Source: Schizochytrium sp. TIO01 (taxonomy: Eukaryota; Protista; Bigyra: Labyrinthulomycetes). From it: a stretch of DNA of 64,000 nucleotides. The notes beneath the pieces are model-generated. The model was not told the DNA's origin. It was given only the letters and a program-made list of their open reading frames with translations, and made no database searches. Shown here one piece after another: positions 36,290 to 53,707 of the stretch. Each line of letters begins with the position of its first letter. The stretch's first letter is position 1. A program made the position numbers and the translations under genes. The stretch spans positions 992,001-1,056,000 of the forward strand of contig SMSO01000008.1 of the NCBI GenBank assembly GCA_004764695.1. Direction: 5' to 3'.

Positions 36290-39200
36290 ATGTCGGACCA
36301 CCCACGTGTTGTCGCTGCCCTTGAACAGCTTCAGAATGGTGCTACAACACTGAAGTAAGTTAGCATCGCTTGCTTGCTTGCTTGCTTGCTTGCTTGCTTG
36401 CTTGCTTGCTTGCTTGCTTGCTTGCTTGCTTGCTTGCTTGCTTGCTTGCTTGCTTGCTTGCTTGCTTGCTTGCTTGCTTGCTTGCTTGCTTGCTTGCTTG
36501 TCTGTTGTATTAAGTATGCATCTAACAAAGAGCAATATAACAACGCAACAAAGATGAAATCCTGAAAGCCAATATCGATCACTCACTAACTCTATGCATG
36601 CATCTAATGTGTATTGTCTTGGTTGCCATCATTCACTCAAATCAAAAGTCTTGGTGGCAACAACATCGGCCCAGAGGGTGCCAAAGCAGTGGCTGCGGCT
36701 CTGAAAGAGAACCGGTCGCTGTCATCACTTGAGTAAGTTGTCTTACACTTGCTTGTACAGGAAGCTCGCTTACTTGGTTGTTTGGGTGGTGGGTTGTTCA
36801 GTGTGTTAAATTGGACGGTGATATTTTGCTCAGTTTTGATTTGCAAGTTTGTGTATGCGATTGCTTGTTTGATTGATTCACGGATCAATGATCTGTTTTA
36901 TTGAGTTTGTATCCAACAAAGAGCAATATGACATTTCAACAAAGATGAAATCCTGAAAGCCAAAATCGATCACTCACTAATTCTATGCATGCATCTAATG
37001 TGTATTGTCTTGGTTGCCATCATTCAATCAAATCAAAAGTCTTGGTGGCAACAACATCGGCCCAGAGGGCGCCAAAGCAGTGGTTGCGGCTCTGAAAGAG
37101 AACCGGTCGCTGTCATCACTTGAGTAAGTTGTGTTAGACGGCGGCATGTGGGTTGCTTTTGCTAAATTGTTTCGTTGATTGCTTGCTCAGCTGGGTAGGT
37201 GGGAGGTGGATTGTTTGGTGTGTTGAATTGCACAGCGGTGGTTAGCACGAATTTGTTTTGCAAGTTTTTACGCTTGCTTGTTTGTTTATTTGATTTATAG
37301 ATAGATTGTCTGTTTGATTGATTCAGTATGCATCCAACAAAGAGCAAAATGGCAACGCAACAAAGACGAACTCCTGAAAGCCAACATAGATCACTCACAT
37401 CCATGCATGCGTATAATGTAATGTATTGCTTGCCATCAAATCAAAAATCAACAGTCTTCGTTCTAACAGAATCGGCTTGAAGGGCGCCAAGGCAATGGCT
37501 GTGGTGCTAAAAGAGAACCAGTCGCTGACATCACTATAGTAAGTTGTCTTGGCAGCAGCTCGTGGACTTGTTTGTAAATAAGGTCCGCTTGCGTTGCTTG
37601 GTTGTCTGGGTGGTGGGTTGTTTGGTGCGTTGAATTGCGCGGTGGTCGTCTGTTGCTGGGTTTTAATTTTCAAGTTTATGTATGCGATCGCTTATTTGTG
37701 TGAGTAATGGATTGATTGTCTGTTTACAAAGAGCAAAGTGACAACGTAGAAAGATGAGTTGTGAAAGCCGACCTAGATCACTCACGTCCATACATGCGTA
37801 TAATGTTATGTATTGCTTGTCATCCTTCAATTAAAATTAAAAAGTCTATATGGGAACGACATCGGCGACGAGGGCGCCAAGGCAGTGGCTGCGGCGCTGA
37901 AAGAGAACTGGTCGCTGAAATCACTATCGTAAGTCGTTTTGGCAGCAGCTCGTGGGCTTGTTTCTACATGATGCTCACTTGCTTGGTTGTCTATGTGGTG
38001 GGTTGTTCAGTGCGTTGAGTTGTAGGGTAGTCATTTGCTCGGTTTTGGTTTGCAAGTTTATGTACGCGATTGCTAGTTTGTTTGATTGATTGATGGATTG
38101 GTTCTCTGTTTGCATCAAACAAAGAACAAAGTGACAACATAAAAAGATGAAATTCTGAAAGCCAACTTTGATCACTCACGTCCATACATGCATAAGAATG
38201 CAATGTATTGCTTGTCATCCTTTAATTAAATCAACAGTCTATATTTGAACGACATCGGCGACGAGGGCGCCAAGGCAGTGGCTGCGGCGCTGAAAGAGAA
38301 CCGGTCGCTGACATCACTATCGTAAGTTGTCTACGCAACAGTGAAGCTCATGTACGAACAAGTACATGAGGCTCGCTTACTTGGTTGTCTGGGTGGTGGG
38401 TTGTTCAGTGTGTTAAATTGCACGGTGATATTTTGCTCAGTTTTGATTTGCAGGTTTGTGTATGCGATTGCTTGTTTGATTGATTCACGGATCAATGATC
38501 TGTTTTATTAAGTATGCATCCAACAAAGAGCAATATGACAACGCAACAAAGATGAAATCCTGAAAGCCAATATCGATCACTCACTAATTCTATGCATGCA
38601 TCTAATGTGTATTGTCTTGGTTGCCATCATTCAATCAAATCAAAAGTCTTGGTGGCAACAACATCGGCCCAGAGGGCGCCAAAGCAGTGGCTGCGGCTTT
38701 GAAAGAGAACCGGTCGCTGACTTCACTATAGTAAGTTGTCTTAGTGGCCTTATTTGTACATGAGACTTGCTTGATTGCTTGTTTGTTGGTTGATGTGCTA
38801 AGTTGGACGGTACTTTGCCAAGTTTTGTTTTGCAAGCTTATGTAAGCGAGTGCTAGTTTGATTGATGAATTGATTATTTGTTTGATTGAGTTTGCATACA
38901 TGGCCACGTGGCAACGATGAATTCCTGAAAGCCAACCTAGATGACTCATGCATGTAATATATTGTTCTATGCATTGCTTGCTATCATTCAATTAAATCAA
39001 CAGCCTAGAGCGGAATAAAATCGGCTCAGAGGGTGCTGAGGAAGTGGCTGCGGCGCTGAATGAAAATCATGTTCTTCAGAAAATCATGTAAGTTTCGTGC
39101 TTTTTTATGTTTTTAAAAAGCTTGAGTGATAAAAGAGAGATTCGAAAATCTGAAACTAATGAAGCAGAGTTGTGTGTACCTCGGCAGTCTTGATAATGAT

Positions 39201-52200: not shown

Positions 52201-53707
52201 ATGTATTGCTGGCCATCATTCAATCGAATCGACAGTCTTACTTCGATCAAAATCGGCGCCGAGGGCGCCAAGGCAGTGGCTTCGGCGCTGAAAGAGAACC
52301 GGTCGCTGACATCACTATCGTAAGTTGCCTACGCAACACCGCAGCTCTTGGACTTGTTTGTACATGATGCTTGGTTTGTTGTTTGGTGGGTGGGTCGGTG
52401 TTGTTTTGCAAGTTTATGCAATCGCTTTTTTGTTTGTTTGCTTGTTTGATGGATGAATGAGTTGTCTGTTTGAGTGAGTATACATCCATCGAACAAAGAA
52501 CAAAATGACAACACAACAAAGATAAATGCTGAAAGCCAACCTAGATCACTCACGTCCATGCATGCATGCGTGCATCTATTGTAATATGTAACGTGTAATG
52601 TATTGCTTGCCATCATTGAATCGAATCGACAGTCTTTCCTACAACCACATCGGCGACGAGGGCGCCAAGGCAGTGGGTGCGGCGCTGAAAGAGAACCGGT
52701 CGCTGACATCACTCAAGTAAGTTGTCTACGCAACACCGCAGCTCGTGGACTTGTTTGTACATGATGCTTGGTTTGTTGTTTGGTGGGTGGGTCAGTGTTG
52801 TTTTGCAAGTTTATGCAATCGCTTGTTTGTTTGATGGATGGATGAGTTGTCTGTTTGAGGGAGTACACATCCATCGAACAAAGAGCAAACTGACAACACA
52901 ACAAAGCTAAATGCTGAAAGCCTACCTAGATCACTCACGTCCATGCATGCATGCGTGCATCTATTGTAATATGTAACGTGTAATGTATTGCTTGCCATCA
53001 TTCAATCAAATCGACAGTCTTGTTGGCAAGGATATCGGCTACGAGGGCGCCAAGGCAGTGGGTGCGGCGCTGAAAGTGAACGGGTCGCTGACATTACTTG
53101 AGTAAGTTGTTTAAGCAATAGCTCGTGTACTGTTTTGTGCATGAGACTTGGTTGGTTGGTTGCGTCGTGGGTTGTCTACTGTGTTGTTTTGCCGATGTTT
53201 TTCTTCGCGTCATTGCAAGTTTGTTGCGGCATTGTTTGTTTGGTTGATTGTGGATGTAACAAAGAACATGATAATATCAGAGAATAAATGAAACTGTACT
53301 GGCAATACTGTGGGTGCCTTTTGATGACGTGAAATTGTTAACTGACGAACGGAGTTGATGTCATTTCGTTTTTACTGATCCTTAGAATGTCCGATTGGTT
53401 TACGAATGAAATGTACAAGGAGCTCGAGTTGAATAAGCAAATTTGTTCTGCAAAGACAAGAAGGAAAATGCTTGAACAGATATCTCGTGAGCTTCGTTGT
53501 ATACATCTTATAAACGATGCACTTTCTCTACCATTTTCAGTAAGGCGTAGTATTCTTACACAAGCTTGGCCTGCGAACAGGTCTGGTATGCCGAGTTCAA
53601 AAGAGGACTATATTGCTGCGCAGAAAGTAGAGCTTGATTTGCTGGAAGCTGCAAATGTTGCCTTTCATGCAACATTGGGATGTCTAGGCCCTTACATATT
53701 GAAATAA
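49267..53707 (+). CDS. Multi-exon LRR protein (10 RI-type LRR cassettes + short helical tail), predicted 408 aa
   Basis: Exons 49267-49331, 49602-49685, 49987-50070, 50365-50448, 50734-50817, 51119-51202, 51504-51587, 51890-51973, 52236-52319, 52633-52716, 53018-53101, 53386-53707; all GTAAG..AG phase 2; total 1227 nt, open; last exon is the 53387-53707 ORF. Confidence 0.88.
49400..53101 (+). repeat. Tandem array of 10 intron + 84-nt LRR-exon units (modal period 385 bp)
   Basis: Exon-start spacings 385, 378, 369, 385, 385, 386, 346, 397, 385. Confidence 0.96.

Follow-up and report, generated by a model that had tools for sequence, protein, structure and literature searches.

Two leucine-rich repeat genes beside rRNA genes

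A 64,000-nucleotide stretch of the Schizochytrium sp. TIO01 genome (the window; G000:C7:992001-1056000, in an assembly of 64.07 Mb and 37 contigs) contained two tandem-repeat arrays next to rRNA genes. Array 1 (TRF: 36517-38741, period ∼391, 5.6 copies) adjoined a 5S rRNA gene at 35717, and array 2 (TRF: 49438-53118, period 385, 9.7 copies) had a 5S gene at 48686 on one side and an 18S gene at 57659 on the other. The two arrays are very probably the repeated middles of two protein-coding genes, here called gene 1 and gene 2, which encode one 28-residue leucine-rich repeat (LRR) per exon and would belong to a germline repertoire of recognition proteins. Both 5S genes were located on the minus strand, divergent from the LRR genes: the first (35717-35835; Rfam RF00001, 96.5 bits) was 454 bp away from the ATG of gene 1, and the second (48686-48804; Rfam) was 462 bp away from that of gene 2. 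The 18S-5.8S-28S ribosomal DNA (rDNA; 57659-63185, plus strand, Rfam) was found downstream of gene 2.

In both arrays, the repeat unit of ∼385-390 bp consisted of one 84-nt phase-1 exon and an intron of ∼300 nt. An earlier note on this DNA had claimed 17 in-frame 84-nt LRR cassettes in two arrays, without any stop or frameshift, and a scan of the window for AG, 84 nt and GTAAG returned exactly these 17 (7 + 10), all of them open, among 18 matches on the plus strand; two further matches were on the minus strand. All 17 cassettes are open in a common phase (a first base ends a codon, 27 whole codons come next and the last two bases begin another). The donors in both gene models were all GTAAGT and the acceptors all NAG, and the introns measured 262-331 nt with the exception of the last intron of gene 1 (100 nt). 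The ATG exons of the two genes (65 nt each) were 94% identical. Both gene models, each running from the ATG exon through its array to a terminal exon, are in frame because the summed exon lengths including the stop (3213 nt or 1070 codons for gene 1, 1227 nt or 408 codons for gene 2) are multiples of three; the junction codons were checked singly. The structural observation of the earlier note is confirmed.

Each cassette encodes a 28-residue LRR of the ribonuclease inhibitor (RI) type, x-L-x-x-N-x-I-G-x-E-G-A-K-A-V-A-A-A-L-K-E-N-R-S-L-T-S-L, and in the consensus of 199 cassettes the residues L2, N5, I7, G8, G11, A12, L19, L25 and L28 were each present in at least 92%. The 28-aa period, the L-x-x-L-x-L-x-x-N-x-I/L strand and the amphipathic helix are those of RI-type (LRR_6) repeats. 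Domain and database searches were run exon by exon; a single cassette exon scored 13.2 bits with PF13516, which is under the cut-off, and homologs do carry PF13516. No signal peptide or membrane segment was found in the exons read.

Gene 1 (plus strand) begins with exon 1 at 36290-36354, which contains the ATG, 21 codons and 2 nt before a GTAAGT donor. Seven LRR exons follow at 36649-36732 (84 nt), 37040-37123, 37455-37538, 37845-37928, 38238-38321, 38647-38730 and 39004-39087, the last of which is a diverged final repeat. The terminal exon (39188-41747; 852 codons and a stop) encodes a linker, Roc, COR-A and TIR, domains that the earlier note had not named. The Roc GTPase (approximately 39321-39962) scored 63.7 bits with PF08477 (cut-off 27), and its motifs could be read in the translation, including the P-loop GKGGAGKTS, DYGGQ and GTFLD at the position of the LRRK2-like THLD. 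COR-A (PF16095; 40191-40448, residues 335-420) lies after Roc and scored 45.9 bits (cut-off 35.3), and COR-B reached only 15.8 bits, under its cut-off. Thus, gene 1 has both features that define ROCO proteins, a Roc domain with P-loop and DxxG and a COR domain after it. The TIR domain (41265-41621) scored 47.3 bits with TIR_2 (PF13676, cut-off 28) and 31.4 bits with PF01582, and it resembles the Thoeris ThsB-like models of PADLOC (E = 2e-7). As to the catalytic glutamate that NADase-type TIR domains have in the helix after strand C, glutamates are present in ...PARE... and ...CRYEF...; the PDB alignments are weak (E ∼0.003) and end before or at this point. The PDB relatives of the terminal exon were LRRK2 Roc and bacterial Roco proteins, and no Pfam match to a NACHT or NB-ARC NTPase, the hallmark of NLR/STAND proteins, was found in it. 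Proteins with the order LRR_6-Roc-COR-TIR occur in Hondaea fermentalgiana (automatic annotation, ∼43% identity) and in Aurantiochytrium transcriptomes. Gene 1 itself is unannotated, the best database match to it being 56% identical. A (GCTT)33 microsatellite (36368-36500, plus strand, TRF) is located within intron 1 of gene 1, and the first intron of gene 2 also carries (GCTT)n, in 12 copies at 49351-49399.

Gene 2 (plus strand) opens with a 65-nt ATG exon at 49267-49331. The pattern scan placed its LRR exons at 49602-49685, 49987-50070, 50365-50448, 50734-50817, 51119-51202, 51504-51587, 51890-51973, 52236-52319 and 52633-52716, and the tenth, at 53018-53101, is of a terminal type (...KVNGSLTLL) that also ends other arrays. 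The terminal exon (53386-53707), whose junction is predicted, encodes a conserved tail of 106 aa and a stop. No Pfam, PADLOC or usable Atlas match was obtained for this tail, and its AF2 model consisted of two long helices at low confidence (pLDDT 67.6). Transcriptome open reading frames (ORFs) matching the tail were 79-88% identical. One ORF recovered with the tail profile (P0124), from a paralog, has five RI-type LRRs that lead straight into the tail domain, and it maps exon by exon to ∼17 genome loci at 80-91% identity. These loci, L021 (G000:C31:5690076-5693414) and ∼16 similar ones, make up a third subfamily of the LRR-plus-tail kind, which is more diverged and has short introns. Gene 2 (ATG exon, 10 LRR exons and helical tail) is presumably spliced like gene 1.

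Splicing and coding constraint of the cassettes

We compared the gene 1 segment 36501-41800 with contigs from RNA-like runs of three studies (X1, X2 and X11) and from a DNA-like run (X18, 63 Mb). The earlier note had predicted GT-AG junctions, including 39087^39188, and RNA-like contigs of all three studies join gene 1 exons. Joints with GT..AG ends were found exactly at 37538^37845, 37928^38238, 38730^39004 (two runs, X2 and X11) and 39087^39188 (three runs, X1, X2 and X11). A further GT..AG joint in RNA-like contigs (X2), 36732^37455, is equivalent to 37123^37455 since both exon tails are identical. An X1 contig spans exactly 37040-37123, and contig loose ends past 38321 enter paralogous LRR exon starts directly. 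Many loose ends were exon-to-exon joins of paralogs, including paralog exon-1 tails joined to the first LRR exon. The intron bins had zero depth in X1 and X11, and the terminal exon was tiled by RNA-like contigs. On the other hand, none of the GT..AG joints, that at 39087^39188 included, was present in the DNA-like X18, whose contigs were continuous through the introns. Transcription of gene 1 and its splicing at five predicted junctions are shown by these contigs; the gene model runs from an ATG exon through seven LRR exons to Roc, COR and TIR.

Throughout the genome, the cassette exons are under strong coding constraint. Using an nhmmer model, we obtained 231 matches that cover the whole exon and its splice sites, of which 229 keep 84 nt; the two frame-broken cassettes (85 and 86 nt) were both in locus L017. 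The introns had 1.87 indel events per unit, at which rate ∼94 broken exons would be expected under neutrality, giving a 40-fold deficit of indels in exons. Stops at the variable codons were not seen at all, where free assortment of bases would give 29-45. The possibility that cassettes gain stops and indels at the rate of the introns, raised in the earlier note as a way in which its reading could fail, does not agree with these counts. It should be noted that nhmmer reported six exon matches as containing indels, and in four of them the indel falls in the intron flank rather than in the exon.

Variation among the cassettes was concentrated at 14 hypervariable sites, located in codons 3, 4, 6 and 9 and in the two last exon bases (the split junction codon). 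The mean pairwise difference over 154 aligned units was 0.569 at these sites, compared with 0.099 in introns and 0.056 in the remaining exon. Even pairs of units whose introns were <1% apart were still 34% different at the hypervariable sites, and in a recent pair (L005/L006) the difference was 7.2% at these sites, 2.8% in introns (Fisher p = 0.002) and 1.3% in the constant exon part (p = 0.014). The constant exon part and the intron were ∼90-95% alike over all chromosome ends. The variable residues correspond to x1, x3, x4 and x6 of L-x-x-L-x1-L-x3-x4-N-x6-I, together with a D/S site and an A/G site. In established LRR structures, x1, x3, x4 and x6 are the strand residues that face the solvent on the concave side. 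The LRR strand spans the exon junction, and therefore the two variable patches lie apart in the DNA with a conserved intron between them. Linked sites at the exon end occurred in a few discrete combinations (CTC-AA, CTA-TC, CTT-GA and CTA-TA), and codon 9 was dimorphic (GAC/TCA).

The same sites were conserved among very close copies. Three gene 1 copies with 1.5-2% non-coding divergence had no change at 105 hypervariable sites, and a comparison of four runs with gene 1 revealed 18 intron differences, one exon difference at a constant site and none at hypervariable sites, although contigs would miss rare variants in such a comparison. Thus, the description of the family as a diversifying system was not borne out as far as an active or somatic mechanism is concerned. 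Mutagenesis of the type produced by diversity-generating retroelements was also considered and dropped, because variation is not limited to adenines and AAC, the codon of the conserved Asn, does not vary.

The family across the genome and its known relatives

The genome search suggested in the earlier note was run with one 84-nt exon (gene 2 LRR exon 4) and yielded 1062 first-look candidates, that is, of the order of 1000 cassettes. The ATG exon gave ∼70 first-look copies, the tail 101 matches (95 free of stops) and the Roc-COR-TIR exon ∼15 close paralogs. More than 180 additional cassettes of the same anatomy were retrieved across 20 loci. The arrays open with the ATG exon and close in the tail (the majority) or in Roc-COR-TIR (L011, L019 and gene 1), and 12-13 of 15 loci had a divergent 5S gene that precedes the ATG exon by ∼430-450 bp. 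The nearest relative by intron was in another array for 117 of the 154 units, often at 95-98% identity, and the introns did not cluster by array. Because the nearest intron relatives are mostly in other arrays, the units behave as one pool, as exchange between chromosome ends predicts; the idea that modules can exchange is borne out indirectly by these counts.

Two more whole copies of the gene 1 locus, 98-99% identical and with the same seven cassettes, were found at L023 (G000:C8:63600-70000) and at L024 (G000:C7:37200-43400, the left end of the contig). In the copy on C8, a C>A change truncates the protein by four residues (stop at codon 849 of 852). Seven Roc-COR-TIR paralogs with internal stops resembled pseudogenes, and the one that was checked loses no more than these last four residues; hence, a high proportion of pseudogenes is not claimed here.

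Several additional observations were made on the surroundings of the arrays. Just past the window, L002:2807-10000 (G000:C7:1068807-1076000, minus strand) contains at least 17 units of 425-426 bp that are 96% alike. The unit of this class has an 84-nt LRR exon (...EGAKAVAKALEGCKNLQTL) followed by a GTACGT donor, and its length fits group 5 of the published LORE-TEARS repeats; one 84-nt exon of this array carries a stop. L017 and L018 (G000:C34:2927000-2937000 and 2833000-2843000) form an inverted array pair that is identical except for three indels and lies ∼90 kb apart in a 4.7-Mb contig, and several more internal arrays likewise occur in inverted pairs, which suggests that this assembly has joined chromosome ends or that a large palindrome exists. 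Telomere-type TTAGG repeats form a short interstitial tract (ggttaggttaggttaggttag) at 54565-54585, past gene 2 and ahead of the 18S gene. Directly downstream of the 28S gene there is a tRNA match of 115 nt (63813-63927, 48.6 bits), whose length could accommodate an intron, and a further 5S gene lies ∼7 kb downstream of the 28S gene (L001:6266-6384; G000:C7:1062266-1062384). No tandem repeat was found in the 10 kb following the rDNA, in contrast to the published typical chromosome end, and the contig runs on for 84 kb past the rDNA. Elsewhere in the window, two long ORFs (445 and 455 aa) overlap on opposite strands at 27722-29092 in a GC-richer stretch.

Repeats of this kind have been described as LORE-TEARS in Aurantiochytrium limacinum (Collier et al., bioRxiv 10.1101/2023.06.15.545109). 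Group 0 of these elements has a median length of 385 bp (326-627) and ∼9 copies and lies between 5S and 18S genes, and group 5 has a median of 430 bp (408-481; Table S5 of the same preprint). Both arrays of the window are similar to group 0 in unit length, copy number and position, by which, rather than by unit sequence, they are likened here. The earlier note had equated the repeats with LORE-TEARS units of ∼385 and ∼406 bp: group 0 fits both arrays, but the ∼406-bp class (group 1) is found past the 28S gene and does not occur in these arrays. Group 0 was published as non-coding spacers, whereas the units found here are exon-intron units of spliced genes. The word 'leucine' is absent from the main text of the preprint (bioRxiv 10.1101/2023.06.15.545109), and our literature search found no paper linking Aurantiochytrium, LRRs and rDNA.

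The nearest known kind of gene is the LRR-ROCO family of the brown alga Ectocarpus, in which one 72-nt exon encodes each 24-aa LRR, exons are shuffled and the concave face is under positive selection (Zambounis et al., 2012, PMC3341825; Liu et al., 2024, PMC11378527). This literature confirms the parallel drawn in the earlier note, including the shorter LRR class. Both families occur in stramenopiles, combine LRRs with Roc-COR and use single-LRR exons of a fixed length that keeps the frame; in both, the number of repeats varies, the concave-face residues are hypervariable or positively selected and the products have been proposed as immune receptors. They differ in repeat class, with plant-type LRRs of 24 aa (72 nt) in Ectocarpus and RI-type LRRs of 28 aa (84 nt) here. 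Moreover, unlike in Ectocarpus, exon and intron together form a satellite-like tandem unit that is homogenised genome-wide, the genes sit between 5S and 18S genes at chromosome ends, TIR follows COR at the C-terminal side, and most members bear the 106-aa tail instead of Roc-COR. Species of the SAR group other than brown algae were reported to have at most four ROCOs (Liu et al., 2024 survey, PMC11378527), compared with ∼15 close paralogs of one type here.

Three other systems share part of this organization. Vertebrate NLRs and ribonuclease inhibitor have 28-aa RI repeats on modular exons of 84 nt or of repeat pairs, and NLRs act as cytosolic sensors. The cassettes resemble them in repeat type and modular exons, but gene 1 has no NACHT/NB-ARC, its switch is a Roc GTPase, and the introns are homogenised rather than diverged. 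In lampreys and hagfish, somatic gene conversion assembles the variable lymphocyte receptors (VLRs) by copying cassettes into a germline gene that is incomplete. Both systems have many LRR cassettes that differ at concave-face residues; unlike VLR cassettes, those described here are ordinary exons with canonical splice sites that are joined by splicing. VLR-like assembly would involve cassettes that lack splice sites and arrays that differ from cell to cell, and the DNA-like X18 had none of the GT..AG joints and no variants at hypervariable sites, with the limit that contigs miss rare variants. Subtelomeric contingency families, such as var and VSG, encode parasite surface antigens. They are similar in their location at chromosome ends and in sequence exchange between non-homologous ends, whereas the present family appears to consist of cytosolic binders on the host side and belongs physically to the rDNA unit.

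Possible origin and role of the family

The following scheme could account for these features. Ectopic recombination and unequal crossing-over among the rDNA-linked chromosome ends would duplicate, delete and homogenise the units, while selection would keep the concave-face residues distinct during homogenisation. Such selection might act against conversion tracts that overwrite codons of the binding face, in which case old differences would persist at sites in tight linkage. With ∼100 genes and ∼1000 cassettes, the family may represent a germline-encoded set of cytosolic proteins for recognition. Where Roc-COR-TIR is present, a ligand bound to the LRR arc would switch the GTPase, which would in turn release TIR signalling; members with the tail alone may be sensors, decoys or partners. 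An immune role, antiviral or anti-parasite, appears to be the most likely use, with about an even chance of being correct. A wider picture is tentative and, taken as a whole, somewhat doubtful: nearly every chromosome-end rDNA unit might contain an LRR receptor gene of its own, placed between 5S and 18S-28S, and the ectopic recombination by which subtelomeric rDNA stays uniform might also generate diversity in the germline, shuffling, duplicating and homogenising the cassettes under selection for distinct binding-face residues. The family would then parallel, in a protist, the immune repertoires of plants and animals, with Roc-COR-TIR as the output arm and ∼100 tail-only sensors.

Several observations weigh against the interpretation of the arrays as such a repertoire of spliced genes. 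First, the third (synonymous) codon positions in the constant exon part hardly vary, and exon nt 82, itself synonymous, is hypervariable and tightly linked to the following two bases; for these reasons, protein-level selection alone is insufficient. Second, the RNA nature of the runs that hold the gene 1 terminal exon is a guess only. The RNA-like contigs also share variants with the two 98-99% identical copies of gene 1 (on C8 and at the left end of C7), so that the transcripts may stem from any of the three copies. The junctions of gene 2 and the first junction of gene 1 (36354^36649) are predictions only. Third, a transcriptome also yielded the tail by itself, as a 'complete' ORF of 105-109 aa; therefore, some transcripts may be unspliced or begin late. 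Finally, 9 of 16 exons in the 425-bp array of L002 are frame-broken (82, 83 or 85 nt), due to either decay or assembly error, and the exons of the same class were intact in L005, L017 and L018 (13/13).

Of the other explanations, that of an expressed LRR family with a non-immune function survives best, and we consider it unlikely. The products could be regulators of rDNA, 5S genes or the nucleolus, binders similar to RanGAP or RI, or proteins for self/non-self recognition in mating or fusion. Such functions would suit genes that stand head to head with 5S genes and upstream of 18S at most chromosome ends, and most members end in a helical tail and have no known signalling domain; RI-type LRRs are also well known for many non-immune functions. 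However, hypervariability restricted to a surface across ∼100 paralogs is typical of immune receptors, as is the fusion of some members to a TIR domain similar to those of bacterial defence (PADLOC ThsB-like).

It is more doubtful still, and in our judgement improbable, that the genes are real but owe their variability to a dedicated mechanism, either somatic or programmed cassette assembly similar to that of lamprey VLRs, or targeted hypermutation or patch conversion. The near saturation of the hypervariable sites within flanking DNA that is 90-98% identical, the 34% difference at an intron distance of <1% and the hypervariable synonymous site beside the junction codon are what such a mechanism might produce. 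Yet splicing at canonical sites, and not DNA rearrangement, brings the cassettes together, hypervariable changes were absent from the three gene 1 copies (0/105) and between the four runs, and the discrete linked exon-end types and two codon 9 types are those that old, reshuffled alleles would give. A dedicated mutator for the hypervariable sites is therefore unlikely. As for the published view that the repeats are non-coding spacers for the maintenance of chromosome ends or rDNA, with incidental open frames, their fixed places between 5S, rDNA and telomere, their homogenisation between chromosomes, the almost equal conservation of introns and exons and the G-rich intron motifs of some units (G-quadruplexes were published for 32% of group 0 elements; bioRxiv 10.1101/2023.06.15.545109) agree with it, but spliced joints exactly at the cassette borders, the 40-fold deficit of exon indels with no stops, and arrays in frame with Roc-COR-TIR, with homologous proteins annotated in other thraustochytrids, make it hardly credible and contradict it as the sole explanation, although a DNA-level role beside coding is possible.

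On the basis of the reading as spliced LRR genes, a published class of 'spacer' satellites would be a hidden, unannotated gene family of ∼100 members, and candidate receptors of the ROCO type with one LRR per exon would extend from brown algae to heterotrophic labyrinthulomycetes, with an LRR-Roc-COR-TIR architecture added that has transcript support. The finding is also a warning that masking of tandem repeats can conceal intron-rich genes for repeat proteins. One question that arises is whether the family owes its evolution to being linked with rDNA at chromosome ends, and the finding offers a tractable organism with persistent mirusviruses in which to ask how protists may build variable recognition repertoires.

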